From: Trichosphaerium sp. ATCC 40318
Lineage: Eukaryota > Protista > Tubulinea
Length of the DNA: 64,000 nt
Assembly (NCBI GenBank): GCA_038496445.1
Contig: JALMLS010000270.1
Location: 42,660-106,659 of the forward strand
Direction: 5' to 3'
Below the pieces are notes generated by a model. The model saw only the letters and a list, made by a program, of their open reading frames with translations, was not told where the DNA came from and did not search any database. Shown in pieces: positions 2,074-63,400 of this stretch; positions within the stretch are counted from its first letter, which is position 1, and each line of letters opens with the position of its first letter. The translations under genes were made by a program, and so were the position numbers.

Positions 2074-5000
2074 ATGAGCAGTAACGAGGATTCGTACAAT
2101 GAATTTATTCAAGGGACACCAGGCTCACCAGAACAAGTTCGAGCGTCTACTAGCAATGAATCGCTTGCTTCGCGTGGGTCTGGGCGGTCTAAACATAACA
2201 AGGGCATTCATAGTTTAGTAAATCAGCTAAAAGGTAACGTTGACGCAGTTAAAACATGTTGGGAGTTAACTGCCACCACAAGGTAAAAAAAAACATCACA
2301 AACACAAGAAAGAGCCTTCATTCCATGGTAATCCAATAAAAAGAGACAGAGGAGATACATCGTACTCTATGGGATCAAATTCAGCAGAAGAAGAAACAAA
2401 ATACTATGGCATCTACGAAGAGAAGCAATTTAACGAAGCAGACGCCGCTAAATGTTCGTAACAACGCGTTGGGGCGTTTTTTATATTAACCTTTATAAAA
2501 ACCGGTTCATTTTGCCTTTATAATTACCCCTTTAACAGTGGTGACGCTTCAACGCCTGTTAAAAATAACAGTCCTCATTTCAGAAATTTAGATGCGGCCA
2601 AACTATTTGAGGCATACGAAGAGCATAACGTAAGGTACAGAGTCAGTTGCTTGCTTGACCAATAAAGCAGAAGTTGTTTATTTGAAAAAAATTGTGAAAA
2701 ATTTACTCACGGTAGGCTGTTAAAACAAGACTTGATGAAGGATAGACAAACTGCTGCTGATAGATTACAGCGTAATGTACATAAGAATTACCCAAAGTTC
2801 ATCAGCAGTTCGAAGTACATCTCTAGTATCCTGAGACAAACCAAATGAAGGAACTTCAATTTTTTTATTTGTTTGTTACACCACGCTTTTAGTAATTGTT
2901 TCTATCCTTCACGTTCACTAAAGATTTGGAAATGGATATGTTAGAACTTAGAAATCATCTTACAGCAATTAATTCGGTAATGAAGGGGTTAGAGAAGCGT
3001 AAACTTAATGTTGCCAGTACGTCTCGTTTATTTATTTTTTTGGTATTTTATTTTGTTGTTATGTAATTTTTACTCACTTGTTGTATAGCTTTTGCTCCTG
3101 GAACATACTCTCAAACAAAACAAGTAGCTAATGACCAAGTGAAACGTGATATTGATTGGTTTTTGGAACTACCTGATGAACTTGACATTCTCACTTCTGA
3201 ACGATTGTTTGGCGAGGCTGTTAATCTTATAGAGCGCGCAGAAGCACTCAAAAAGCAGAAAAAGAGACCACATTGTGCGCTGGCATACCAAACTATTCAA
3301 GGAGAGTTAGTATTTAAAAGGTATCTCAAACCAAAGCTAATGTTTTCAGGTTAATAATTTTGAGTCTAGACAGAAGATGGCTGAAGTCCTACTTCGTGAT
3401 TTACAAGCTGCCGCTTTAAAAAGACCTGAGTGTGCTTACATTATTGCCCATTTGCATAGACTTGGGTACTCAGCACAGGTACAATCGAGCACCTCTTTGA
3501 AAACTGTTGAAGTCATTGTTATGTAACTCTTGCTTTTCTAGGCACAAGATACATTTCTACAAACACGTAGTATCAAACTTAAGGCGAGTGTAAGGTGAGA
3601 ATAGGATAACCTTCGTTTTTTGTAGCTAACTTGTTTTTTTAGGCAGCTAAGTTTTGAAGGTGATATTCTTCTCTTTACCAACGAATTATCACGTGTTGTA
3701 TTTTCAGCCATTTACCAAACATGTGATGACTTTTTGGAATGGTTTCCTAAGCAGCATATGATATCAGGTATGAGACAGTGCCTTTTCTTTATTTTCAAAA
3801 CAACATCACGTGTTGGCAAGGTAATCTGATGTTGTATTCAAGGGTTTGTTGTGTGGGCGATTAGAGAGTTAGAATCTTTTGGAGAGCAGTTTACAACACG
3901 TATTCGCCAAGTATTATCAGCTGAGCTTGATAACTTTGAAACAATGGGGAAATGCTTTGAGATTGCTCAAGCTCATTGTAGAATGGTACAAAAGATTTTC
4001 TACTTCTTTGGTTCTAACTTTTTTGTAGCTTGAAGAAAAGCGATTAGCGCTCACGTTTTTCTTACAAGGAATGTTTAATAAGGACTTGGAATATGCGTTA
4101 GATAATTACTATCAACGAACAAGACCTCTAGTTGATAAACAAATCGGCGATGAGAGTTGGGTTTCTGAGATGTATTTCCCAGAAGGTATGTCAAATCGTT
4201 TTGTTGTTTTTAAAAAGATTGTCTGGTTTTATAACACCTTTATTTAGCTGGAGAGCCAGTATCACTTTCTCCTAGCGCAATATATGTATATAATATAACA
4301 GAGAAGTTTGTGAAAGGCATCAAATCTATCATAACACCTCAGGTTCATTTTTTGTTTTTCCGTATTTCCGAGAACTTGTAGCTCATATTTCATTAGCTTG
4401 TTCCTCTTGTTGTTTCTACAATGTCTAAAATGCTTCGTGACTATGTTTTCTCTCTTCGTGTAATTCTAGAGCAACAAAGACCACAACAACTTGGCGACGC
4501 TCAAGTAAGTATCTTGATATTTACATACGTTATATTTCTAATTCTTACCAGCGTTTCCTTACAATTGTTGCAAATGCTAAAAATATTGTTCACTCTTTGG
4601 TTCCAGAAAAGATTAAAACCTTTGAGGTACTATGATCTGTTGCTATGCTTAGATTAACTAACCCTATCCATAGAGTCAACTTGAAGGACCAGAAGCAGGT
4701 TTATCAACACTTCAAACTCAACTACAGTATGCGAACTTACTTTTTTATTTGTTGGAAGCTTACTTTATCGTACCTCAAGATCGATATACGAGCCTATGCC
4801 TATTATGTTCTGTGAAAAGTGGGCAAGCTTCATATCAAGCACTAAGCTTGTATGGGCTGACGTTGTGGCTACAATTTATTCAGAACAACAACTGGCAAAG
4901 ATTGAAAAGCCTGAGCCTTCTCTTAAGTTTGTAAGGCTTTTTGAATACTTGAGCACACTTACATCAACCATACATGATATGTTGGATATAACAGCAGTTA

Positions 5001-5602
5001 AAGTTATCATAAGCAGAATGTTTGAACTTGTACGTACTCAAGTGTTATGAAAACTGTTTACAATCTATTTTTTTTCCTATTTTTTCTGTTCAAGTACAAC
5101 AGAGACTTGTTTGAGTTATTCTTGTTTTGTCTTAATAATATTTGTCGTATAGATATGTCTTGATCTTAACGAAGGTGAATTTTGGGCAAAAGAAAATACA
5201 GAAGAGCCAATGATAGGCGAAAAAGGTACAACCTCATTAATCAATCTTTGCTATTTTTTCTTCGATGTTTTTTTTTTTGGTCTTGCTAATGCCTTGTTCT
5301 TTCTTTCAGGATTACAACAGCTTGTAATTGATTTACGATTCGCCAAAGAAGCTGTAGGAAGATTTGGAACTGATGTATCTTACAAGGCACTTCAGCGCGT
5401 ACAAGATCGTGTTATTACACAGTACACCAGAACAACAAATGGTGAAGGTGCCAAAATACTAAAGGTAAATGGTTACTGTTTTTTCAACACTTAATTGCAT
5501 TATTATGTATATTTACTTATCGTTATTTAGGGTAACAACATGTTTTATAAGGATGTAGTTAATGCAGCCCTTTCAAAAACTAAGACATTACTAAACGTGT
5601 AA
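2074..5602 (+). CDS. EXOC8: Exocyst complex component Exo84 (no PH domain seen), multi-exon
   Basis: Vps51/Exo84-type N-terminal segment (DRLQRNVHKNYPKFISSSKYIS-LEMDMLELRNHL), then WFLELPDELDILTSERLFGEAVNLIE, LHRLGYSAQAQDTFLQTRS, GFVVWAIRELESF, GLQQLVIDLRF. Last exon ends with TAA at 5600-5602. Confidence 0.85.
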
Positions 5603-6461
5603 TGCATCTAAAAATCAACGAATATTTAAATGTAATGTAAAATACAAACTGTGTTATTTTGTGAAGTCTATCAGTGAAATCCATGATAGTTGTACAGTGG
5701 ACTTTGTAAATACGGTTTTGACGTGCATGTAAACTATTGATGGAAAGGTTGAGATGAGAGTAGACACTGTTCTTGTACACCTGTTTAAAGAGCCATGACC
5801 AGTCGGTAGTTCTCTGAAACAGTAACTTGGTGTTTTTTGCAAAAAACAATACACTGGGCGCGCTTTTGTACACTTGGAAATATCCAACTTTTTAGGGCTG
5901 TTTACTGCCCCAGCTACCATTAAAAACGTTTAACATTTTGTCGGCCAATGTGATCGGTTGTACTATTCTGATACGCACTACTAGCGCAACTGTCGACAAC
6001 GCTGAGCAAAGCTGGTCAAAACAAGTCTGTTCTACGCGCCAAAATTTAAAAACAAGCCAAACGGAAGCAAACACCATAACGAAATGAATAACCAGGTAAT
6101 TCGCGTATATTGCGGCTATAACTACAATATTAACATAAATACGCAGATTACAGCGCAGCAGAACAGACAAAACTTCCAGTTTGTAATGACAAGCAACCAC
6201 GACGCTTATAAGGCACGTAAAACGTACTGAAACCACTAGAAGCGCCACAAACGAATATTGTTTCTCGTTTGCACACTGCCTTTAACAGCCCAACGATTTG
6301 TACTTCCCTTACATTCGGTGTTGGTGATGCGGTCGGTTGCGTGCCGCCGCTTAGCAAAAAACGTTTAAAAACTCTATTCGCTCGTGGGCTGGTGATTATT
6401 CGCTTGTGTACGTTCCCTTAAACGCCAACTCAGAGGTTTATAACCACTGGGGCTGGGTTCG

Positions 6462-7104
6462 ATGTGGTTGTCAGATCTGCCGCTTAGCATGGACGTGCGG
6501 CATATCACTAGCTTGAAAGAAGTCGGGAAAGAAGTTTCAGAACCGATTGAAGTCTTCGCTTCGAGTTCAAAAGTCACAAAAAAAACCAAAAAAGTAGAAT
6601 TTGAAGCTCGAGCCAAATTCTGCGTTTTTGGTTTTTTTTTTCTATCTTCTTTCGTTGTGCTCTAGCTCTCCATGCTTACAGATTTTAATATAGGCACTAT
6701 GTGATATAGAGGTTGCTGAGAAAGAAGCACAGTTAGAGGCGCTTAGAAAGGAGAAAGACGCTCGAATAGCTGAACTTATCAAAGAGTTGCTTAAGCGTAC
6801 AAATCAGCTTGATAATGCTTTAGATACTATAAATGAGCTAAAGGAACAACATAAAAGTAAAGTTGGAGCACTAGAGGTAACAATAAGAAACTTAACGAAA
6901 GAAAGAAATCAAAAGAGAAGTGCCGAGAAATTGCTTCAAAGAGATGTTAGAGCATTGAAGAGGCGTAAGAAGAGTGATGATAGGACTATAAAGGCTGTTT
7001 CTGAGAGTATAAACGTTATGAACTTTGGTGATGCTAGAACGATTATTGATGAGTATGTTACGGAAAGAGATGTTGAAGATGAAGGTAGTGATACTGAGAA
7101 GTAA
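6462..7104 (+). CDS. Hypothetical coiled-coil protein, 2 exons
   Basis: Exon 1 (to ~6593) splices in frame to exon 2 (from ~6693), which encodes E/K/L heptad-rich sequence and ends with TAA at 7104. Confidence 0.5.
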
Positions 7105-7715
7105 AACACAGAAAAAAAAGTTGTAAAAAATGAGTGTAAATAAAAATTGTATTTGTAGGAGACTGTTTGCAAGTAAATTAAACATACGAGCAACATAGCT
7201 ACTATAGAACTCAAAGGTTGCTTGCCATTCTACTTAGTAGTGATGAATCGGTAATGTCTGCATATTCAATTCCAGGCGTTTGAGATTGCCAGATACTGGC
7301 AAGCAACGATCACCTTCCCACCCAGAATGGCTTAACTCCATGGTTGTATACTAAATAACCCAGTATCCCCTTACCAAATTCAATCATACTCCTTTTGAGA
7401 TTTTACCTTTAGCATTAAAAGACTTGATTGCAGAAATAGTAAAGCCATACAAGTTTGTATTGCATCACAAAGATCAGACTAAACTGTTTCATGTTTCTAT
7501 TTACGAAAACTACAATGCAAGAAATTACTTTGTAATGGAAAAAATGACAGTGCATATGATACTTGTATGGCATGTATCAACGATTGTGTAGCATCATAAA
7601 ATCCAAATATGTAGTAAGAAAAAAAGAAGAATCTCAAACAAGAAAACTGTTCTGTCCAAGCTTATAAACGTAAAGAAAATCATTCTCAAATTTTTTGTGT
7701 GTATTAAATAAGGTG

Positions 7716-8862
7716 ATGGACGACAACTATGATACTAGGTCAAATTACAGTGAATCACAAGTGAGTCGGTGACATTCTTTGCTTCAGTCAGTTTTTCAAA
7801 TAAAAAATACAAGGCTAACCGACAATGCCAAAGGGAACTGCCATTACACCAAAATATAAAGAGAAAACTGTTATTACCAAAATAATACTATTGGGCGACT
7901 CTGGTATTTTACAATTCATTCGCCTTTACTTACTTTCAAACAGGTCTACGAGTGGGTAAAACATCAATTATTAGAAGATACAACCAAAATACATTCTCAG
8001 ATCATTACAGGTCGACTATTGGTGTCGATTTTGTACGAATTTTTACTCTTTTTATTGTTTGTTTTGTCGCCTTTTTATTCTGTTTACAAAAATTAATAAT
8101 TTAAAAACGGAAGTTCTTGCTACTTTTAACTGCAAAGCACCGTCGTATTAGTGTAATCTTACCATTACTCAACATGTTTAAGGAGGGCAAACGTACTCAA
8201 GGGAAACTGATCAAGGATATCCAATTACAAATATGGGAGTACGTATCACGTCTTTCACTAAAAACGCGTGCTTTTGCACGTGACAGAAAACAAACGAAAA
8301 TATTTTGTGACTTATTCTTAGCACTTCTGGAAGGGAGGTTGGTTTATCGGGTATGGGTAAGCACAAGACCTCCCAATAAATGTTTAACCTAAAATTTAGC
8401 TCGTGTTTATATTAAAGGAAGTCACGTAGCATTTGTGGTGTTCGATGTAACAAAAAGATACACTTTTGAAAGAGTGGCAGCATATGAAAAGGTGATGGAG
8501 CTCACCAAAGATCAGCAATGTTGTATTGCCATTGTTGGCAATAAAATAGATTTAAAAGATAAACGAGAGGTATCAACAAAAGAAGGACGTGAGTTGGCAG
8601 ACTTTTGGGGTGCTTCATACTTTGAAGTCAGTGCAAAAGAAGTACGAGTAAAACAACAACTTTTTTGTTCTCAGTTCTGATCACTTTTTAGGGCACTGGC
8701 GTATTTGAGATGTTTGATGAAATGATAAGCCGTGCTGAAGAATTACATGTAAAAGCAGGACGTCATTTAGAAGAGTCTCCTACTGAGAAAGTTATTGTAC
8801 CTCCAGAAAACCACACTTCATTCTTCTCAAGAATACAATCTTGGTTTACAGTACAAAAATAA
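7716..8862 (+). CDS. Atypical Rab-like small GTPase
   Basis: Spliced motifs KIILLGDSG-VGKTS, YRSTIGVDF, LQIWDTSGRE, IVGNKIDL, YFEVSAK. C-terminus ...SFFSRIQSWFTVQK* has no cysteine. Confidence 0.88.
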
Positions 8863-8889
8863 AACCTCCTTTGCTTCAATATATCATGC

Positions 8890-9068
8890 ATCCCGTTAGT
8901 AACTTACAACTTGTAAGATTGATCGAATGTACACCACTCAATACTGTGCCACCAGAGTCTGTCACTGCTGTATTCCTCACATCAATGGTATGTACGTTTC
9001 AATGCTGAAACACCTATATCTGTAACGTGGGTGTAACTCAAATCAATGGTATGAACACCTGATAGAGG
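8890..9068 (-). pseudogene. Leucine-rich-repeat gene fragment, frameshifted
   Basis: Reverse strand reads LSGVHTIDLSYTHVTDIGVSALK /frameshift/ NVHTIDVRNTAVTDSGGTVLSGVHSINLTSC, i.e. ~24-aa LRR units. Confidence 0.6.
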
Positions 9069-10347
9069 TTCAAAGATTGGCTGAAAATGCTTTTTGTAAT
9101 TTTTTCTTAATTTATGGTCAAATCACGTGATTAAAAAAGCCAAGAATTAGTCAGTGGTAACAAGTTGTAAAGGCATCAAAGGTTCATGTATGACGAGTCT
9201 ATCGGGAGCACATACCATACAGTTATCAGATACGAACTCAATGCATGATTGGTTGGTACCGCTTTCTAAGGTCAAAGTTTTAACTTATGGGGATGTAAAA
9301 AAATAACAGACAAAGGCCTCGAATCGGTTGCTAATGTACATGGAACAAAACGTTAGTCTGTCGGCTAAACAATGTGCCAGTACGTTTGTTTAAATCAATA
9401 TGTAACTTCTTTGCTAAGTAAAGGGTGCTTAAGTCAAATACAATCAGTCATTTGTAGCTTATTTCTTTTTACAAAACTGTTTTTTCTAATGTTGTTATGT
9501 AGCTATTGCAAGAGCGGCATGCAAAGACACTCAATGTGAGGTTGCCAGAAAATGCGCCAAGTACTGCCATGAAGATAAAGCGGTTTTTGAAAAAGCTACA
9601 AATACCACAATGTGGTCAGCGGAGTTTAGGAAACTTCAACAAAAGTTGGCATAAATTAGCCACTCAATGGATGTTTCGTAACATGTTCAATAAAAGAAAA
9701 TGCATCAAACAATATTATATTTGCCTCTGGTAGGCACAATGGTTAAATACATTTTGATGAGTTTGCTAACTGTCACTTTGTATTTGGTAATTGACCTGGA
9801 TTGGGATAATTTTCTCAATTTTCAGTAGTTTGTGTCATCTTTACCTTATGTGAGGCAGTTTACTGAACGTCACGGAAGTATAAAAAGTAATTTAATAAAA
9901 TGAGTCAAATGAAAAGCGATTTGGCTTAAACAAGGACAACAACAATGAGCACAAATTACAGCAACAGATATCACCAACAAGCACGCATCCACCTAACCAG
10001 TTACACCCCGCATACACCTTTAAAAGTGTAGTGTCTCCAAAATTACTTTAGTAATGAGCTTCTGGGGCGTTTACGCACTAGGCGAAGTTGTCTTTGTAGG
10101 CACAAAATGACAGAAAAACTCGCACAATTTTCAACTTTTTAAGTCAAAACGGTACTTTTACGCGCATGGCAACAATAGTGTTTACTTCTCAACAATACAG
10201 AATGTTGATAATTGTAACCATGTTTAATTGTCAAAGTCATACGAATTAAAAAAAAACAGTGCGGGTAAATTCGTTTCCGACTTTGGTTTTTTTTTTTGTT
10301 TTTTTCGAGTTTTCATTTTTTTGTAAACAATTGCGCTTAAAACAACT

Positions 10348-41779: not shown

Positions 41780-42239
41780 GACGTGTTGTCACTCTTGAGG
41801 TTTATCACAAAGCAGTGTTAAGTCAGTGTTACTTGATACAAGATTTTTTTCAGTGAAGTGTTATTGTAATTTGCATTACGGTTCTGGTTCTGTGTTTTTT
41901 ACTGATTTGTTACAAGAACGCAATTGCCTTTACAACAGTTTTTTTGACCACTTGGAGAGCTTTAATCTGTATCCTGGAACATATTTTCCAAGGCTTGGAA
42001 GAAAAAATTCGTTATTTGGTTTTGAATAACAGTAATTTACAGTAGCCTTGAGTCACATGTTGGGATTACGTGACTTTGTTGTTACATCAGAACAATATAC
42101 CCACCTTAGCCTGCTTTAATTGGTCAAAGGGGTTAAAAAGCAGAGTGGGAAATATCCTCACTTTCTGGGGAATTATCCCAACTGGTGGATATTTGCTTCT
42201 TTTTTTTTGATTGCCGCTTACAATAGCTGTGATTTACAT

Positions 42240-43620
42240 ATAGGAGACCCACATGTGTCATTATTGTGACAGTGTGACGTTTTTATGTACACTTTTGTAC
42301 TTGTTCTTACTTTTGTCCATAGCGACGTGTTTGAGTCCTTTTTCGTGGTGTTATTTTAGCATTTCCAGCAGCAATCGCTTTGTACAATTTTGAAGTAGAG
42401 CATGTCTTCGCTAAGAGTAGTCAGAGAACAGATTATGAAAACAATTGTTTTTTACCTTTTTGTACTTGTAGCACAATTGGCACTTCAGATAGTTCACGTG
42501 ACACTTTGTCTTCAACATAGAATTGAGACATGGATTCGCTTGAATAGATTGAATTGGATGACTCTGAGCACTCTTGTGAGGGTGATGGAGAGGCAGGTTC
42601 TTCCTCTTTTTTTGACTTTCTTTTTCTCTTATTTTTACGTTTTCGTTTTTGAGTGTCATTTACGAGCTGTTACCTTGTCTAACTCAGGAATGTTCTCTTC
42701 ATGCTCTACAATAATTATTAAATATACTGTTGATGTTACTTACCATGTAAAGCGTGAATGGCTTGCTCTTGTACAACTGTTTCAGCAGAATAGTCTTGCT
42801 CAAAAAGTGAAACAGCAATAGTGTGTTTACACTCTTTACCAGAAGCTTTAAAGCCTCCACAACCACACCTGCCCATTTTCAAGTCTACAGGATATCTAAC
42901 ACGTTTGTAGGTTTGCGATTTAACAGTGTACACCTTATGATCTTCATAGGAATCATCAACAAGAGCCACATGATGCTGTAAAACCTGTTAAAAAACACAA
43001 AAATCAAATACAATACTTACGTTTTCAACAAGTTCACGTGCTTTTTTCTCTTGTGCAGTTCTGTCAAGCCTGGCTTTTGATTTTCGAAGGTGTTTGCCTC
43101 CAGTTAATGCAATCTCTCGCCGAATAATGCAATGATTATCCAGAATTGCTGGCATAATTTTTGTACAGCGGGAGAGACCATAACGGTGTTGAGAATATCC
43201 TTTTCATGAATAGTTAGCTAGCTATTATTTTGTTGTTACATACCATAAACAGTCATAAATTGCTTCCACTGTGTCTCCATTTTATTGTTGGTGTTATATA
43301 AACCAACACGGCTCTTTCGACCAAAATCAGCCCATGCTGCGCACCATTCTTTATCAAGCCTGTGAGAAATTAGGTGATGTTATTTCAAAGTGCACGTACA
43401 ATTCTTTTTGAAGTACAAAAACAATTCATTGGCTGGTTCAATAGTTTTTTTAGGTGACTAGGAAAATGATTGACTTGACTACAGTTACATTGGATACATG
43501 TAAGACAATGGAATAGTATTTGAATTTTGATTTTGGCTTTGGGTAAAGGTGTGAACACGTGTAATATTTTGTTGACAATACTTTTTTTCAGCGACAATAC
43601 CATTTTCAATTGTTTCAGAT
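42240..43620 (-). pseudogene. 3' half of a MULE transposase (catalytic E region + SWIM zinc finger)
   Basis: ELFLYFKKNWLDKEWCAAWADFGR..YNTNNKMETQWKQF; VYTVKSQT..VDLKMGRCGCGGFKASGKECKHTIAV (SWIM). Frameshifts and stops present. Confidence 0.85.
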
Positions 43621-43916
43621 ACTGAACATCACCCCTCAGCGGACTTATATGCCGTTATAAATCAAAACAAAGTGTATGTACGTAATAGAACAAATTAAAA
43701 GTCCATAAAATTTATTTAAGTGGTTGGCGAGATACTTTTTGAGTACACTTTTTTTAATTGTTATGGTTTTTTTCTTTCGTAGCTGCAGTCATGTTAATTA
43801 ACCAAAAAACTTCTTACTTACCTTTAATGGAGCTTTAAGACGTTGATTATGTTGGAGGCGTTGCTTCTTCTCCATCTTTTTTTTTTTTGGCAGCTCTTTT
43901 TGCTTGTCTTTGTGCT

Positions 43917-46436
43917 TTAATTTTCAAAAGTGACGATAGTGATAATCAAAAATACACTTGCATATTTACTATTACATAGAACAAGCGAAATATTGTAATC
44001 GCCTGGATCTGGTGTGTGCCTGAGTCGGTTTGGAGACATTGCTGACCACACAATTAAAGCAATCTTAACAAGTTTAGGGATAAACAAGTAACAAAAGAAG
44101 TACATGTTAAGGATACTATTTGACCGCAAATTAATGCAGCTGTTAGTTTAATAACATCTATTAGAGGTACTGCAACTACATGAGTTGGACGTTTCTTGAG
44201 GGTGTTAAATATTCTGTGAATTCTGTATGTTTTTGCCACAAGCGGCCTTAAAGTTGTGTCAATATTGTAGCTCTATTGATATTCAACATACCCCACAGTA
44301 GTGATAAAACCCATCAACGGAATCCATACCCTAAACTCACAGATAACATCAGATATAGGAGCAACCCTTTTGTTTGTTAGAATGACAGGTATTATAGGAT
44401 TACGGCCATACCAAACAATTGTGCCACAATACAACAAGCAAATACCAAAAAGGATAATCACAAGTAATTCTCTTGTGGATGCTCTCAATATCGGAGAAGA
44501 TTTCCTAGCCAAAATTTGTTAGTGTTGCCAAGGATACGGTTTTTATGATGAGTACCAAAAGTAGAGTACAACAGTGACTACAGACAGAGTTAAAAGCAAT
44601 CCAAAGCACCCAAAGATTATTCCTATGATAGCTGCAGGATCATCCCACCTCCACTCTCTTAAGGTTCGTAGCTCTTCTACTATCTTAATAGACAGAGAAG
44701 TATTTGAAAGCACCATTGCTGTAGAAAATAGGAAGTTAGTGCTGTGCTCGACAATCATGGTTCCGTTGAATATAACATGCGACCCTTGAGAGAATTCAAT
44801 CAAAGAAACCATATCATATGGTTGAAAGTGTGTTGTACGAGGTATTGATACAAATAGTGTACCAACTGAAAAAAGAATTAGGTAGTAGTAAACAGTATTT
44901 AACATACAAACAGTAATAGTTGACTCACTAAGCGCCAAATGAGACTTCCCTGATGTCATGTTGAAATTGGCTTGCGGCCCAATAATGATGTCTGTTGATT
45001 TCAGTTTTAAACGTCCCTATATGTTTTTAAGCAAGTCAAATAATAAACAAGTGCAGGTACATCAATAACTAGCGATGAGTTTTGAAGCATTTTCATACAA
45101 CTTTCTTGACCATTAACAAATATCTCAGGAGCAATACTCAAAGTAGCATATTCGAGGTTAACAATAGTAGTATGAGGGATATAGATCGTGCTTGATATTA
45201 AACTATGTATGCTCATTGATCCTATTTATACAAGGTTAATCATGTGACCTTTCAACTAAGACATGTACCTTTGTTTTCTATTCCGATGGAGTCAAATATC
45301 ATACCAGAAATAGAGGAGGTGCAACTACGTTTGAGTATAAGCTGATTCTCAAGGTAAGACACCGTTCCCTAAAATGATAAGCCTTGAACAATGAGAGCTA
45401 TATGTATTTCAATACATATATTCGTCCAATTTGAGCATTGAACCTCGAAATCACTTCCAACACCCCGTTCCTTGAAAAATTCAGAAATCCATCTTGTATG
45501 ACCAGCAGCATCTGAATACTCTTCAACCCAACTTGAAAACAGTAAAATGTGCAACGTGCTGAATGCATTGCCTACCCATGTATTAAAAGGGGCTAACAAG
45601 AACAAAGATACCTCCAGTAATCTGTGGGTATAAGCTATCAATATCAGCTGGAATGCTATTTTCAAAACTGTTGTTTGATACTTCAGTGATATTCTCTATT
45701 TCATTAAATGAGATAGCTAAATTTATCAGCACATACAACGGTTTCTTAAGTTTACCAGGTCCTGTATTATTCTTGAATTGGTTATTATGTACTGTAATAT
45801 TATTTGTGGATGCTATTAGTCTTATTCCACTACCACTACTGGCAGTGTTTTGCTCGAAGGTATTGCCAATAAAATACATTGGTTGTTTCGATATTGCTGA
45901 TAAGCACCTCCCAAATTTGATGCCTTGTTGTTAAAAAACAAGCAATTTGACACATTTACTGCTCCATTGGCTACGCTACTAATTCCCGCTCTAAGTCCAG
46001 CTCCATTCTGTCCAATATTATTAGCAAATGTACTATTGTATAAACTAACAGCGCTATCAATGAGCGCTCCTCCTCCTCGAGAAATTCCCTAAGGGTTTAT
46101 GGCTGTATTATTGAAGAAGATTACATGGTTGCAAAGCACCTTCCCAGCGTCTGTGTATAACCCACCACCTGATGAGGCATAGTTACCATCAAAATAGCAA
46201 TTTTCCATCGCTATATTGGTATTAGTACTATATAGTCCACCTCCATAACCAGCGATATTATTACTACAAATACATAAGCGACATATACTCAATTTTTTAC
46301 CTGAAGGTGCAGTTTTGTATCTCAATCTCCGCATAAAGAAGCCTCACTGCCCCACCATAAGATGTAGCTTTGTTGTGTGCGAATTTAGAACCTGAAATGT
46401 GCACGGTTGATTCGAGCCTTTGAGATGATTCAATTG
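43917..46436 (-). pseudogene. Captured host-gene fragment: Pmp-like beta-helix repeats (FxxN/GGA) + class-C GPCR TM1-TM5
   Basis: FAHNKATSYGGAV, NNIAGYGGGL, FDGNYASSGGGL, FEQNTASSGSGI; then WRWDDPAAIIGIIFG, KSSPILRASTRELLVIILFGICL, ICEFRVW, PLVAKTYRIHRIFN. No signal peptide; truncated in TM5; introns retained. Confidence 0.82.
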
Positions 46437-46474
46437 CTAGAAACTATTAACTCTACAAAATGGTTTTAACTTAC

Positions 46475-48577
46475 CTTTCCCCGGGGTATTTAGTTTCTTC
46501 ACTTTGACAGCATTAGTTTCATGTACCATAACAGTATTGGTCACTTACACCTCTTCTCAATTTTCTCAGCTTGATCTTTTCGCCTCTTTAAAGTAACACT
46601 CTTAGGTGTGCCCACAGCTATTCCAATAACTGTGCGTTGACCATCTTTTAAGCTGCAAGTAGCAAACTTTACCAGTGAAGAAAAAACAACATCACAAGGA
46701 CGTTTCCTTGTACCCTCATATGAGAGCACCTTTTTAACAGCACTGTTGTTACCCTCGCTGATGTTATTGGTACGCGTATGCTCCCAAGGGGTATCAGTAA
46801 CTGTCCATAGCGCCCATGTAGATGGAGGACATCTAGTATAAAAAATGTAAGGTAAAGAAAAAGCAATAATTAATAAACAAGTATTGAATAACGTACTTGG
46901 TGACTTCATCAGTAACATTCATGTATGTGTTGGCTAGGTACTTAATGTATGCTCTACAGTCGTTTGTTTTTTCAAGTGCTTCCTTCTGAAAGGAATTCCA
47001 ATAACGATAAAACTTTTTCTCATTTTTTTCATATAGTAAAGTTGTTGACACCAACTTACACCATCTATTCTCCTCTTCACGCCCTTCTTTCTTCATACCA
47101 GCTCTGAACGCTTTCTTCTGTGCGCTTCAGCAATATGGTAGATACATTGGGATATTTTTAAAGGGCCCAGTACATTTACAGCTGCTGAATAAAATATGAG
47201 TCTTCTAAAAAAAAATTACAAAAAAGTTTACCTCGTTTCATATTTGTTTCTCCATCAGTCATCAAGCATCAAAAGCTGTTCCATAACCTCATCACTGTGC
47301 TAATATCAGCTTGAAAGCAAAGTAAACAGTAGGTACTATTTTTTAGAGCCATGGCTGTATTTGAACAAACTTACAATTTTTTTGCCCCACATTCTATGGT
47401 AATGGAACTGGCACAATATAAACACCAAACCCAGCATCAAAATGGCTTTTTCTCCGCCACATCTTTGTCGATCATAACTACTGGTTTCCATTCTTTTACG
47501 CCTGTACAATAAATTATTTAATTATTAGACGTGTTTTACGTACCATTTGGCAGTTGCAATATTACCTGCTTTACTGCTAGATGCAATGCATAAAGCACAC
47601 AAAATGCCTCTTCCTGTTTTAGGTTGTTCACAAACCACACCCAGATTGGAAATGAGTACACATTTGTACACACTGTTAATGCCAATCACGCCCTGGCCAT
47701 ACTTGGCTAGCAGTTTTAATGACTCTGCTGTAGCTAAAACTACTACTGCAAAGTTGCTTTTGTCTCCAGAGGGCCGAAATTCATCTAAAACTGGGTATCC
47801 AATGTATGGTTTGTTAACAGGGTCCTGTAGAAAATTGCACAGCTCTTGAATGATATTTTCAGACCTTGTGTGAGTTAATGTTTGTTTAGTTTGTTGTTTT
47901 CAGGGAACTTACAGAGGAGTCTTTTGATTACTTTGAGCCAGTCATGTACTGTGCTTTGATCAATTATCCACTTCTTATCTTCTTCATCAACAATTAATTT
48001 ATCTCGCTTTAATTGACGTCTCATTTTTCGTAAAGTGTCATCAAAGTCACTTGGCTTGACACGACCATAACGTTCTGAAGCGCCATATTCATCTTCCTCA
48101 ATCAACTTTTTACGTGCTTACTAAATTTAGCACAGAAATTAAACAAATAAAACCAAAACGCACCAATATAAAATAGTCTTCAGGAATAGATTCTCTCGCC
48201 TGCAAAGAGGCTAAATCATGTACTCCAGTTATTTTAATGGTGGCTTCTTCTTGTGAATTGCAATAAATGGTCCATGTGAGCTTACAACTGCAGTTGGTGC
48301 AGCTATTGCAAAATAAGACTTCTTTGCACATAATTCTCTTTCTATTGGCAAGTTCAGCTGGAATTTTAAAATAAGGATCTTTTCCCATGAATCTTGGGTT
48401 GCTAAAGCAAGGACCTCCTAATACACCCGTTTGCTTTTTGATTCCATTTCCACAACGAAGAGTTTGAACCTTCTCTTTTTTAGTTTCTAGCTTCCAATGT
48501 GCATTATAGTTTGTCTTAGTCGCATGTATGTGGTTCAGCAACAACGGCAATTGTGTTACCGGTACCACTTCTTCCAT
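46475..48577 (-). mobile_element. Second, nested MULE transposase gene, intron-containing, probably inactive
   Basis: N-terminal Cys/His DNA-binding region (CSCKLTW..IKITGVHD), VIGINSVYK (N at the expected first D), VMIDKDVAE..ILCQFH (second D + CxxH), RTNNISEGNN (E). Confidence 0.85.
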
Positions 48578-51500
48578 TGATGTGCCGAGAATAGCTAATA
48601 AGTCAGTTTTGATAATTAACCAGCTTAAAGTACACAAGGACCGCAGAAAAGCAGCCACAAGAAGCCATCAAACACTGCAATAAGGTTTTTTTGGTTTGAC
48701 GTGTTATACTCCCCAAATCACTTAAAAAAACTCAGTATTGTCTATTTTTTGTTCCTATAGTACATAGTCAACGTAATAACCCTCATAAGAAGCTTTATAA
48801 CAAGTTGTTGTAGTTTTAATTTGAAACATGCTTATATCCACATCAACACCAATAATTACACTCACGAAAGATAAAAGCTGAAAATAGGAGTATTGTGATT
48901 TAAACTATCACTGCAATCACATGGTTTTTTTTTTTACTATCATATCTTCAGAGATGTGAATATAGTTTTTTCCAAAAACAAAAATTCGAAAGTGTAGAAA
49001 GATGCATAGCTAGGGCAGTCCACTAAACTAGAAAGCGCCTGGTTCACTTACAGTTGGGTCCTCGCTGTGCTTGGAACTAGAACCTGACCTTCGCTCACAT
49101 ATAGTGATCCATTGGTGGGTATAGGCATTCGGTTTTTGTATTGAATTCTATTTTTTCGAAAAGTTTCTTTTGAAAAATTCAGAAAAAACGTGGGTCTGTA
49201 AGAGGGGAGATTTGGTAAGATTCTTGTTTAATTACACAACTACTAATCTGTTATTGTCAACTTCAATAACAGCTCAATAACCTATCACAGCCAAGCAAAT
49301 AACACGGATTAACAGTACATTGAAGGATTGAGGGAGCTTGTTTTATTGTACCAAAAAATAATAAAGTAAATTATGATAAATTGTGTCCTTACAGAATTAT
49401 GCCATAGTCCATTGCCAGTTTTGTCATAGGCGAAAAAACCAACAACTAATGTAGTGAGGATGTCAAGGTACAAATGAAATGATGTAGTACCAAAAAAAAA
49501 ATCAATGTAAAAAAGAGTTGGCACTATAATGTGGTTACTCACTGTTACCTATCGCTCAAAGTTTCCAACCGCTTAATTAGTATGTAGTAGTGCAGAATCT
49601 GAAAAAAAAGAAGAAAAAAAAAGTACCAGCACTCGGAAAAATCCACACTACGGGATATTTCCCTCTCTGCGGTTAAAAACTTCTGCTACTTTTATAAATT
49701 GTCGTTGACCTACTGACGTCAGTTTAGAAAACGTTTAATAGGATGGACTTGTATGATAATATCATTAATACCAGAGCTGCAGCTTACTTATTTGTAATCA
49801 ACTGTTACGTAGGGATATCTACAATGTAATTAATGAATATGTCAATCATTTCAGGCGTTTGAATTTGTGAGACCGAAGCTCAACATTGAACTCAACAGAA
49901 GACGCTAGTGATGTTCCAAACGAATAGAATACCGAATCTATCGCCAGAACGTAAAAAGTTGGAAATAGTTGACTAGGGACGATTTTTGTAAGCGGTTCAC
50001 ACCTCTCATATCAATGCTTTATCCTGTGTGAATGTACCTTTGGAATGAATGGCTCTATTTTGTTACGTTCTAAATGTGGAATAAATTATTTACTTTTTTA
50101 CTTGTTTTTTGGCGTTTTTTTTTAAGACTTAACTAAAAAAGCGTCAACTGAGTAGGGTTGCTCACAAACATATGGTTGTATTATAAGGCAAATACTGAGG
50201 GTTAGGCAAAACCCCCAAATTCTTGTTCGGTCAAACCCCTACGTTTATCTGAATCTTACTAGGGTTAGGCGTTCGCAATCCCACAAATCCACTTGAAAGT
50301 GCTCGTCAACGGTAGGTACAATGTTTTTATTGTGTTTGAGAACATGTTTTCTTTTTTTACAGATACAAAATTTCGTTGACACTTGACGCCTAATCTACTA
50401 GCCTTATTTTGTTCTGCGATTGCGTAAAACTGAGTTTAAAATTGGGTTGGACGTACACACGTGGAAATAAAATCTCGTTCTCGCCTCTGAAACTATCCTA
50501 TACACATGAAAATGACGGAGCGGCGTTTATATGGCATGTGGTGTCCGCTGTGGCAGTGTCGACGCCATAACCTAGGGCGCAAGAATGATCTTCAAAATTT
50601 ACTAGTCTCCGTACCAAATTGAGGTTTAACGCCACCAAAAAAATCTTATGTGGATTGCGCCCTATTTACCGAGTTATTGGCCGCATCTGTTGAGGTTGAA
50701 ATTAGTAAAACGAGGAATACTTGAAGGACTTTGACCTTATTCCACAGCCTATCAACTGAGCTTCATTGCTCACAAACACATTAATCAAGCCAGTATCTGT
50801 TATAAAAGGAGCTTGAAAAGCAATAGAAGCGTTATAGTCTAAAACAAGGATTATGGTACCAAAAAAACGACATTTATTGCGTGAAACACTGAAAACGTTA
50901 GTTTGTGGTGTAAAGAATGAAGAAAAAGTGAGTTCCCAAAATTAGCAATTACACAAGCTTTGACAAGCGTTTAAATTACTGAAGTGTTGTCTAACACTAT
51001 TTTTAATGTATTTACATTAGTTTTAAGCTTGTCGAGCCTTGTGTAATTGATAAATTCCAATATTCTGTACTAATGCGCACCATTAAGCGATTTTTTGATT
51101 TAAATACCTCAAGAGCTAATTGACCATCCCACACTTTTCATAGTGATAGTCAATAATTGTGGTATTGCACAGTATAATTTATAGCAATAGTTGATGGAGT
51201 GTAGTGACACAGTTTCTTTGAACCTGGTTTTGGAAAATCTTGCAGTATCTCCATGTAAAAACTAAGTTCTGTCTCTAAAACTCTTATAGTGGTAAAACAT
51301 ATATACAGCAAGCTTTGTGGCTATCTGATGTAATAAAGTACCCGAGCAAGAGTGAGTTAATTGACATTTTCATTTAAATATTATGTGCATCCACTTCTTT
51401 GAAAAAGAAACCTCTGTGTTTTGATACCTAAATTATCAAATACGCTATAACTGCATATAGGTACACAATGAATTATTGAGCAACTGCCGTCAAAAGGAAA

Positions 51501-52779: not shown

Positions 52780-54045
52780 TAGATCCTAATGAATGGCCTC
52801 TCGTTAGCTGGCGTAATCATAGCTGTGCTTGGGATGCTGTATACACAGGTTTACAGTCTGTTGGTGATAACGTACATTTTTTGAAGCTTCAAGTGGATTT
52901 ACACGTGCTAGGTGTTTCCTACTCTTTCAGTGCTTTTGAGAGATCCAAGCACAGACAATAAAGAATTATTCATTAAACAGTTTTTGGCTGATCTCTATGA
53001 ACGTTTTCCGAAGGAGAAAAAGAAGATTGAAGCAGCATATATCAAACAACGTTCTGGCATATATTCAACACTATTCAATGTCGATGCTGTTCATGAGTTT
53101 GTGCAACAACAATGTCTTGCTTTTCATGCGACCTATGAGTATGATGTACAATGCAACTGTGAAGGTATTGTGCCTATATTTATAGCTATAACATTGCATA
53201 GAATACCAAACAAAACCTGCGTTTGTTTTTGCACCTAGAAGCGTCCAACATAATTTTGAAGAATGGGTAAACATGAAAATTGGCAGAGCTTCAAACTGCA
53301 AAACATGTCGCTATTGTGGTTCCAAAGAAATCAAGGCATACAATATCTCAACATTACAGTGCTTACACAATTATAGGTTATTACTTTGCCAAAGAATGAT
53401 TTCAATGACATTCCAGAGTTGTTTATGCATAACAAACAGTACTAACATAATTGTGGTTTCATTTAATTTTACATAGTGAGTGGAAAGCACAGGGGCAGCA
53501 TCGCTTTTGAGACAGTTTCGAAAATTACGACATTTTTGATTTTTGATATTTACTGCATTTCGAGAATCTTTGAGACGTTTTTACTCACCTCAGAACCGTC
53601 TTAACCAAAAATTGTTATTATGAACATTTAACTAGTATTCTATACTTATAGGCTTAAAAACCATTTTGCGATTCGTTCCTGCTGTGCGGGGGAAAAGTAC
53701 CGACAGTCAAAGCAATTTTTTTCAAAACAAACTTTTTCAAAAATTTCGGAATTTCTGAAACTGTCTCAAAAGCGATGCTGCCCCACAGTACATAATTATG
53801 TGGCAGCCAAATCCAAAACATTTTACATGTTACGTCAGCACCAACAGCGGTTGGTGGTTTGTGGATAACATGAAAAACCCAACTATTGGTGTTAAATCAA
53901 ACCCATGTTTGTTTTTTTTGACAAATTAATAGTTGACAACTGTAGGGACAAATACAAAACTGCAGAACACGATATGTGGGAAATAGAAGCAAAAGAAATA
54001 ACTGGCTTTAAGAGAGCATTTAAAGAATGGAAATGTAAAAGCGTC
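52780..54045 (+). pseudogene. USP-like cysteine protease gene inside the piggyBac element, disrupted by a MITE
   Basis: Cys box WRNHSCAWDAVYTGL, zinc-ribbon-like QCNCE and NCKTCR, His box KHFTCYVSTNSGWWFVD. Confidence 0.7.
53492..53784. mobile_element. 293-bp MITE with 28-bp perfect TIRs and 3-bp TSD (ACA); PIF/Harbinger-like
   Basis: aca|ggggcagcatcgcttttgagacagtttc ... gaaactgtctcaaaagcgatgctgcccc|aca. Excision restores the frame EWKAQYIIMWQP. Confidence 0.93.
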
Positions 54046-60469: not shown

Positions 60470-63400
60470 TGAATGCTCCAACTATTGCTGCGCACAACAA
60501 CAGATGCACCTAACTGGTACTTGCTTGATATTTTTTAGCTTTCTTTCTAACTGTGATAGATGCGCCAACTACACCTACAACTGCAGCCCCTACCACAGCC
60601 ACACCAACAACTGATGCTCCTACTGCAAGTACTCCAACAATAGAACTGCTAACAACAGCTTCAACTACAGATGCTCCTATCATCAAAACCCAGCTCCAAC
60701 CACCAATGTACCTACGACTGAAGCTCCAACAACAAAAGCACCAACCACTAAGGTCCTTATAACTGATGCTCCTACCACTGTGGTACCTACTACAGACGCA
60801 CCAACGACTGAGACAATAAACTATAGATGCTCCAACCTCTGATGCACTGACAGCAGAGGCTACAGCGAAAGCGCCAACTACTGGCACTCCAACAACCAAG
60901 GGGCCAACAAAAGCTGCGCCAACCACAGTAACACCTACTACAGATGCACCAACCACCGAAGCCCCAACGACTGAGGCTCCTACAACTGTAGCGCCTACTA
61001 CAGAAGCACCAACGACAGAGGCTCAAACTACAGATGCACCTACCACAGAGGCACCAACGACTGAAGCTCCTACCACGGATGCGCCTACAACCGAAGCTCC
61101 AACGACAGAGGCTCCTACCACTGAAGCTCCAACGACGGAGGCACCAACAACAGAGATTCCAACCACTGTAGCGCCTACTACAGAGGCACCAACACCTGAA
61201 GCACCAACTACAGAGGCTCCCACCACTGTAGCGCCTACTACAGATGCACCTACCACCGAAGCGCCAACGACAGAAGCACCAACTACTGAGGCTCCTACAA
61301 CTGAAGCTCCAACTTCATTGGCGCCTGCTACTGAAGCACCAACAACAGAAGTGCCAACAACAGAAGTACCAACTACAGAGGCTCCAACCACTGTACCGCC
61401 TACTACAGAGGCACCAACACCTGAAGCACCAACTACAGAGGCTCCCACCACTGTAGCGCCTACTACAGAGGCACCTACTACGGAACCTCCAACTACCGAG
61501 GCACCAACAACACAGCATCCAACTACAATGCCACCAATGACATCTCCACCAACTACAGAAGCGCCAACTACTGTGGCGCCTACCACAGAGACACCAACAA
61601 CTGAGGCTCCAACTACTGATGCTCCAACTACAGAAGCACCTACAACTGTAGCGCCAACAATGGAGGCTCCAACCACAGAGGTTCCTACAACTGCTGCGCC
61701 AACAACAGAAGCGCCAACAACACAGCATCCAACTACAATGCCACCAATGACGCCTCCACCAACTACAGAAGCACCTACAACTGAAACTCCAACTACTGAG
61801 GCACCAACAACTGGTACTTGATTTATATTGTTATCTTTTTCCATCTAACAGTAATAGATGCACCAACTACACAAAGCACAGAAGCGCCAACAACTGCAAC
61901 CCCTACCACTGATGCTCCAACAACTGAGGCTCCTACCACTGCAACCCCTACAACTGTAGCACCTACTACTGACGCTACAACTACTGAGGCACCTACCACT
62001 GAAGCCTGAAGCCCCTACTATGGAGGCTCCAACTACAGGAGCTCCTACAACCGAAGCTCCTACCACAGAGGCGCCTACAACTGAGGCACCAACAACGGAT
62101 GCACCAACAATCGAAGCCCCAACTACTGAAGCTCCAACTACTGCTGCTCCTACCACAGATGCACCTACAACCCAAGTTCCAATTGGCGCCAACTACTGAG
62201 GCTCCAACAACTGATGCACCAACAACTGAAGCACCTACAACTGTAGCGCCTACCACTGAAGCCCCTACCACTGAAGCTCCTACAACTGTAGCACCTACTA
62301 CATTGGCGCCTACTATGGAGGTTCCCACGACTGAGGTACCAACTACAGTAGCTCCTACGACTGAAGCTCCAACCACAGATGCACCAACAACTGAGGCTCC
62401 AACAACTGAGGCTCCAACCACTGTAGCGCCTACTACAGATGCACCAACAACTGATGCACCAATGACAGATGCTCCAACAACAGAAGCCCCAACAACTGAA
62501 GCTCCAACAACAGAAGCACCAACGACTGAGGCTCCAACTACAGAAGCACCGACAACTGTAGCACCAACAAGTGGTACTTTGTATTTTACTTTCTAAAGCA
62601 ACTAACTTTCTTTGTAGATGCACCAACTACAGATGCTCGTACAACTGAAGCGCCTACGACAGAACCACCAACAACGGAGGCACCAACTACAGAAGCACCA
62701 ACAACTGAAGCTCCAACAACTGAAGCGCCAACCACCTAAGCCCCAACTACTGAAGCTCCAACTACTGCTGCTCCTACCACGGATGCACCTACAACTGTTG
62801 CGCCAACAACCGAAGCACCAACTACTGAAGCCCCTACTACAGAATCGCCTACAACTGATGCACCAACAACAGAGTCACCAACTACAGCTAATCCTACAAC
62901 AGCAGCACCAACAACTGAAGCTCCTACCACTGCAACCCCTACAACTGTAGCTCCTACAACTGACGCTCCAACTACAGAGGCTCCTACAACTAACGCTCCA
63001 ACTACGGAACCTCCAACGACTGAAGCACCAACTGCTGATACTCCAACTACTGATGCTCCTACAACTGAAACACCTACTACTGACGCTCCAACTACTGAAG
63101 CACCAACTACAGAGACTCCTACAACTGTAGCACCAACAATTGAAGTGCCAACAACTGAAGCTCCAACCACAGATGCACCTACTACTGAAGCACCAACAAC
63201 CATAGCACCAAATACAGATGCTCCAACCACAGAATCGCCAACTACTGAGGCTCCAACAACTGAACCACCTACAACAGATGCGCCTATGACTGAAGCTCCA
63301 AAGACTGAAGCACCTACAACTGTAGCACCAACAAGTGGTACTTTGTATGTTACTTTCTAAAGCAACTAACTTTCTTTGTAGATGCACCAACTACAGAATC

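Follow-up and report, generated by a model that had tools for sequence, protein, structure and literature searches.

How does part of a host receptor gene, introns included, come to lie between the ends of a Mutator-type transposon, and was that transposon the one that captured it? The question is raised by a 64,000-nt stretch of the genome of the protist Trichosphaerium sp. ATCC 40318 (GenBank assembly GCA_038496445.1, contig JALMLS010000270.1, positions 42,660 to 106,659 of the forward strand), which we call the window and whose own numbering is used below. An earlier note, made from the letters of this DNA alone, had described at 42131-49679 a Pack-MULE-like element, that is, a Mutator-like element (MULE) with a captured gene fragment between its terminal inverted repeats (TIRs). 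We are fairly confident that the locus is a dead composite of three layers, in which a receptor-gene fragment (the cargo) lies within one transposon, B, and B lies within another, A, and that it arose from successive events at the DNA level. The layers and their junctions can be read directly from the sequence; from them we infer the mechanisms and most of the order.

The outer boundaries of the composite are sharp. A perfect 9-bp direct repeat, GGTTAAAAA, is found with the same letters at 42131-42139 and 49671-49679 and immediately adjoins the termini of an element that spans 42140-49670 (7,531 bp). Both termini start with GCAGAG, and the left TIR (GCAGAGTGGGAAATATCC; 42140-42157, plus strand) matches the reverse complement of the right TIR (49653-49670, minus strand) at 17 of 18 nt, with the two ends divergent beyond that point; GGGAAATATCC-like motifs are repeated across about 50 bp inward of the left TIR. 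The genome assembly searched for further copies comprises 70 Mb in 642 contigs, and elsewhere in it we found five left and three right ends of the same family (A). Three of these copies are full and carry target-site duplications (TSDs) of their own: C533:7690-11518 (CGACCAAAT), C488:7315-11143 (CAAATAAAT) and C19:106873-110686 (CAACAGAAC). A 9-bp TSD accompanies all four full copies when the window is counted, termini are identical in six copies, and the left TIR has the same letters in the copies on C533, C488 and C63. In the other full copies a GGGATATTTCCC-type motif just inside the right end is present in duplicate, adding about 21 bp that the window copy lacks. Because these three full copies set the same boundaries independently, a chance origin of the boundaries in the window is excluded. 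The 9-bp TSD and the inverted termini 7,531 bp apart described in the earlier note are borne out by this comparison, as is its view of the element as a TIR- and TSD-bounded member of a multi-copy family, very probably a Mutator-like one.

Canonical A is 3.8 kb long and aligns to 42136-43451 and 47262-49664 of the window; positions 43451 and 47262 are separated by just 94 bp in canonical copies. The copies on C533 and C488 are 100% identical over 3,831 bp and have different flanks, sites and 9-bp TSDs, and family A must therefore have moved very recently. It is probably still active and would be the natural source of a functional transposase. Here its transposase gene is split, with both parts on the minus strand. 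The 3' part (42140-43451; 98.6% substitution identity to the C533 copy) includes an exon with the motif TNNKME, in an open frame at 43239-43379(-), and an exon in an open frame at 42739-42987 that encodes a SWIM zinc finger downstream of the catalytic core (PF04434; 20.2 bits in the window copy and 23.9 bits in the C533 copy, against a Pfam cut-off of 19.6). The 5' part (47262-49670), made up of a zinc-finger exon and the first catalytic exon, is decayed: the codon of the first catalytic Asp is AAC in place of GAC, and the exon has deletions of 5, 1 and 33 bp. Judging from these lesions, the window copy of A is dead even apart from the insertion of B.

Several lines of evidence indicate that family A is very probably a MULE, namely its 9-bp TSDs, its SWIM finger, weak matches of its catalytic core, its motifs and a look-alike score. 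TSDs of MULEs range from 8 to 11 bp and are typically 9 bp (PMC6446971). Read by eye, the A exons show D, D, C-x-x-H and TNNxxE in the expected order, the pattern described for MULE and hAT transposases (PMC5499845). When the first catalytic exon of the C533 copy was searched singly, it gave sub-threshold Pfam matches to PF21056 (E=0.007-0.015) and PF10551 (E=0.14-0.26), again in the order expected. A language-model look-alike search (atlas) gave the catalytic exon a score of 0.96, and its ten best family-bearing matches all belong to the PF21056/PF10551 family or clan. A six-frame scan of the genome for PF10551 returned no match because introns split the domain, and PDB sequence searches with the exons of A and B found none.

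A further copy of A, on C269 (L015, G000:C269:41000-50999), is itself broken by three nested non-autonomous elements, at 5424-7394, 7670-8597 and 8927-9857. Two of these are of about 930 bp and belong to one family, which also occurs in L051/L038 at 96-98%, and the third is 1.97 kb long; their inverted ends start CAGGGCTGAAAC and CAGGTCTGAAAA.

The second layer, B, is a separate TIR element of 2,725 bp that is present at five other loci (C599, C492, C54, C140 and C333), where its copies are 98.9-100% identical. Its ends are imperfect inverted repeats of about 30 nt, the left one starting GGTGACTAGGAAAATGCC, and 8-bp TSDs accompany all four copies whose ends were read. What remains of the left terminus in the window is the last 14 nt (GGTGACTAGGAAAA; 43453-43466, plus strand), which match the left end of all B copies with ends read and adjoin A directly; the following 75 bp of B are deleted. 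The junction lies in a coding exon of A, between the second catalytic Asp and the Glu motif (L011 position 2339/2340). Because a true left terminus of B adjoins A, B would have entered A by transposition; the nested insertion proposed in the earlier note is upheld.

Apart from the terminal 14 nt, only L046 3581-4829 of B is kept in the window. It lies in two blocks on the minus strand, one at 43467-43932 (L046 3581-4046; 97.6% substitution identity to the C599 copy) and one at 46483-47265 (L046 4046/4047-4829; 98.5% identity), which includes the exon with the motif TNNISEGNN (open frame 46544-46918). The last 1,387 bp of B, with the right inverted repeat, are gone together with 94 bp of A, and a TCAA microhomology (47262-47265) marks this B/A deletion boundary. 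No similarity between A and B was detected by tblastx; hence they are not closely related, nor are the junctions points of homologous recombination.

The affinity of B is less clear than that of A. Pfam gave no transposase match on any B exon (a WRKY-like finger appeared at E=0.017), and phmmer with the exon bearing the Glu motif, run against 1.84 billion representatives, gave one weak match (E=6.7e-5), probably owed to a lysine-rich tail. The look-alike search offered leads at 0.83-0.87 (SWIM, FAR1, Transposase_mut). By eye we recognized FVDGTY, MTDGE, C-x-x-H, W and TNNISEGNN, motifs that recur in more distant relatives within the genome. They appear to fit the MULE/hAT clade, and an 8-bp TSD, which is also typical of hAT elements (PMC5499845), would be compatible with either superfamily; membership of B in Mutator, for which these motifs and the weak matches speak, is unproven. 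Both of the different TNNxxE transposase sequences pointed out in the earlier note are accordingly present (A at 43239-43379(-), B at 46544-46918(-)), but they are nested rather than side by side, B is badly truncated, and it cannot yet be called a MULE.

Two more relatives of B lie adjacent to each other on opposite strands of C136 (L051, G000:C136:48000-57999), at 4569-5867 and 8300-9960. The protein identity to B is 65-75% for one and 27-52% for the other, with the same exon order and TNNISEGNN.

Between the two blocks of B lies the third layer, 2,550 bp of a host receptor gene (43933-46482) with PMP-repeat/beta-helix and class-C seven-transmembrane (7TM) parts. It is on the minus strand, as are both transposase genes. 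The junctions, at 43932/43933 and 46482/46483, are clean: B halts and restarts at one and the same base, and a lone G can be assigned to either side. The insertion site reads G|G, with no duplication, no loss of B and an overlap of at most 1 nt. B is uninterrupted across this site in all five other copies. A Pfam search of the cargo detected 7tm_3 (PF00003) at 36.9 bits (cut-off 33.5) in the exon at 44276-44518, with the profile extending into the following exon. The match covers profile positions 33-136 of 251 and the coding sequence of the paralogue runs past the cut, and hence the domain is truncated. Chlam_PMP repeats were found at 24.3 bits (cut-off 20.6), with beta-helix matches upstream. 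At its 5' end the cargo has 8 exonic nucleotides before a GTAAGT donor, and its 3' end is cut within a transmembrane exon.

The cargo has kept at least nine introns, of 40-53 nt, whose GT/AG boundaries are conserved in at least five of seven aligned sequences (the window and six paralogues). They were called from splice sites conserved across paralogues, as an unconstrained search for GT..AG paths was uninformative. When the nine introns between 45611 and 44064 are removed, a single open frame of 449 codons runs to the end of the fragment. The frame is broken just once in these 2 kb, by an exonic deletion of 8 bp near 45490, which is absent from the six paralogues and from the relic on C10 described below; in-frame stops at about 45226, 44273 and 44519-44545 were considered as lesions and rejected, since they are located in introns. 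On this reading the cargo is little decayed, and because its introns are retained it must have arrived as genomic DNA and not as a retrocopy. The earlier note was right about an intron-bearing receptor piece of about 2.5 kb, cut short at either end, as the Pfam matches, the introns and the exon-internal cuts confirm; its junctions at about 43920 and 46430 need to be moved to the positions given above.

Along its entire length the cargo has homologues in a gene family that is clustered on contigs C10, C316, C486 and C394 and has at least eight loci in the genome. Full-length paralogues show 74-77% BLAST identity to it (83.5% by substitutions for one that was recomputed). Its nearest relatives are two relics, C10:176573-177555 and C316:23790-24478, which are 94-96% identical to it over the parts they retain and 98.9% identical to each other. 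Other copies of the TIR and other members of the receptor family exist in the genome, contrary to the outcome (neither TIR copies nor a donor gene elsewhere) that the earlier note had named as refuting it. Substitutions separate the A and B parts of the window from active copies by 1.3-2.4% and the cargo from the closest relics by 4-6%. Since the transposon parts have themselves diverged to that extent, a difference of 4-6% between two neutrally drifting copies would be compatible with the relic lineage of C10 and C316, or a lost sister of it, as the source.

A repeat of about 300 bp with short inverted terminal matches is shared at 96% between 53488-53789 of the window and C10 (L052 3528-3820 and 4758-5058). 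One of the C10 copies breaks up the receptor relic to which the cargo is most closely related.

Based on this anatomy we can propose how the composite may have formed. A 3.8-kb family A element would first have landed upstream of the ANK-ART gene, some 350 bp away, creating the 9-bp TSD. A 2.7-kb B element would then have inserted into the transposase exon of A, between the codons for the second catalytic Asp and the Glu. A double-strand break within B could next have been repaired with 2,550 bp of receptor genomic DNA, introns included, either by capture during end joining or by copying from an ectopic template (template switching), an event of the type proposed for transduplication. Finally, deletions would have removed 75 bp near the left end of B and, in a larger event joined at the TCAA microhomology, the right 1,387 bp of B with 94 bp of A; both may have been microhomology-mediated. 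The only fixed part of this order is that B was inserted before the large deletion occurred. Of the Mutator transduplication suggested in the earlier note, the acquisition of the fragment as DNA with its introns stands, whereas its location does not, as the cargo sits at one position in the nested B and not in the interior of the Mutator element. As things are now, neither transposase gene can be functional and B has lost its ends. The ends of A are intact, and so the whole composite could in principle be moved by active A copies.

Several points weigh against this reconstruction. The analysis covers assembly sequence. Neither an empty site nor an intermediate allele was found; a 30-nt pattern reconstructed for the empty site has no match in the genome at up to three mismatches and none in the metagenome contigs. 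The route of repair is deduced from the anatomy of the junctions. An intact donor of high identity, which the earlier note had proposed to look for, was not found in the assembly, the two relatives at 94-96% being themselves broken. Finally, with regard to the outer layer, the catalytic domain of A falls below the Pfam threshold exon by exon, and its catalytic exon drew no match when relatives were sought by word search.

Among other explanations, the one that survives best, although we consider it unlikely, is that B had already acquired its piece of the receptor gene elsewhere and brought it along into A, which would make B the capturing element and not the Mutator-like A. As this explanation would have it, the cargo is set exactly into B, whose sequence is kept on both sides, and B is a young and active family, its copies hardly differing from one another. 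A cargo-bearing copy of B is absent elsewhere in the assembly, however, and since the right end of B is deleted here, the TSD of its insertion into A is unreadable.

Somewhat less likely still is that the locus is a true Pack-MULE in the functional sense, with cargo and B already inside A when A moved to this site and the composite mobilized in trans by active A copies. The perfect TSD, the intactness of both A TIRs and the very recent activity of the family are all in keeping with such a history. Against it, the cargo is located in B rather than in A's own sequence, and neither a second copy of the composite nor any repeat of its internal junctions occurs in the 70-Mb assembly. Furthermore, the other TIR copies, whose cargo the earlier note had proposed to list, are without host DNA: it was found in none of five other A copies and in none of five B copies. 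With the composite junctions present once in the assembly and the empty site not found, nothing in these sequences shows that the composite ever moved with its cargo.

The remaining two explanations are very improbable. An assembly chimera, in which receptor-gene and transposon contigs were mis-joined, might be suspected in a repeat-rich region of a 642-contig assembly with some near-duplicate sequences, but B restarts after 2,550 bp at the exact base where it stopped, A restarts 94 bp on, and the outer 9-bp TSD is perfect; with the register restored three times, mis-assembly is very unlikely. That the receptor piece is a retrocopy, or was brought in by some other carrier (a Helitron, for instance), would account for the lack of a target duplication at the cargo junctions, but hardly for an insert that keeps at least nine introns, consists of receptor-gene DNA from end to end, has ends that are not inverted repeats and sits at G|G and not at A|T.

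Our preferred reading, successive insertions followed by break repair and deletions, makes the locus an ordinary nested-transposon site with a well-resolved capture of a gene fragment at the DNA level, a known kind of event present in a single decayed copy. Its value lies in being a base-exact example in which all four junctions are readable: nesting, a clean insertion of ectopic DNA, and then microhomology deletions. It is doubtful that the locus points further, to recurrent and ongoing Mutator-type capture of host DNA fragments in this lineage, with the composite as a still-mobilizable Pack-type intermediate driven by active A. If this were true, such capture could shuffle or silence members of a clustered receptor family.

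With respect to its surroundings, the left TSD is placed upstream of the ANK-ART gene at a distance of about 350 bp, and an effect of the element on expression of this gene, which the earlier note had raised, is speculation. The closest paralogous ANK-ART locus (L055, G000:C158:3181-6431, reverse strand) matches the window at 93% identity along 1.5 kb, of which 250 bp lie upstream of the gene. The upstream homology ends at 42028, about 100 bp short of the insertion, and we rejected this locus as a candidate empty site, since the intergenic stretch is unrelated and fully divergent between 42028 and 49974 of the window. At 49974-50100, some 300 bp past the right end of the element, the window holds a dispersed repeat of about 125 bp with at least 40 copies at 80-98% identity. 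Farther away, the region 61000-63400 is 47% G+C with a strong strand skew and encodes, on the plus strand, long Thr/Pro-rich tandem repeats (TTEAP units) that resemble those of a mucin-type surface protein. An Rfam search of the window gave no match.

For plants, the capture of gene fragments by Mutator elements has ample documentation, whereas elsewhere the record is patchy, and our literature search found no report of such capture in amoebae. The closest parallel is with the plant Pack-MULEs (Jiang et al., 2004, as described in PMC6446971 and PMC5499845), with which the window element shares Mutator TIRs and a 9-bp TSD around a truncated, intron-bearing host fragment acquired as DNA. To this extent the label Pack-MULE-like given in the earlier note is apt, since a host fragment does lie between MULE TIRs and a TSD. 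It is less apt in other respects. The window element is not transposase-less: nearly the whole A transposase gene, now dead, is retained, which sets it apart from a non-autonomous Pack-MULE. In addition, its cargo is housed by a further transposon nested within it, it exists in one copy with nothing to suggest amplification, the TIRs (18 nt, 17 of them matching) are short beside those of plant MULEs, and its host is an amoeba-like protist.

Among protists, the amoebozoan MULEs of Entamoeba (EMULE/MULE1_EI; PMC2725143 and Table 1 of PMC6446971) are likewise elements of about 3-4 kb with a 9-bp TSD. They have TIRs of 187 bp and a single ORF, and cargo is not reported for them in the texts consulted, whereas A has TIRs of 18 nt and a multi-exon transposase with a SWIM finger. 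Nesting has a precedent in Trichomonas vaginalis, where TvMULE1 lies inside another, unknown repeat (PMC2725143), also one TIR element within another in a protist genome; that pair is multi-copy, which suggests joint transposition, and is without a host-gene fragment, whereas the composite in the window is single-copy and has one. Finally, host genes or fragments of them are carried by DNA transposons outside land plants in the giant families of several transposon superfamilies in Ectocarpus (PMC12477816) and in the claimed pack-MULEs of the myxozoan Sphaerospora molnari (bioRxiv 10.64898/2026.02.11.705288). These belong to other lineages and involve mostly whole accessory genes or many elements, in contrast to the one decayed copy in the window, where a receptor-gene fragment lies in B and B in A.

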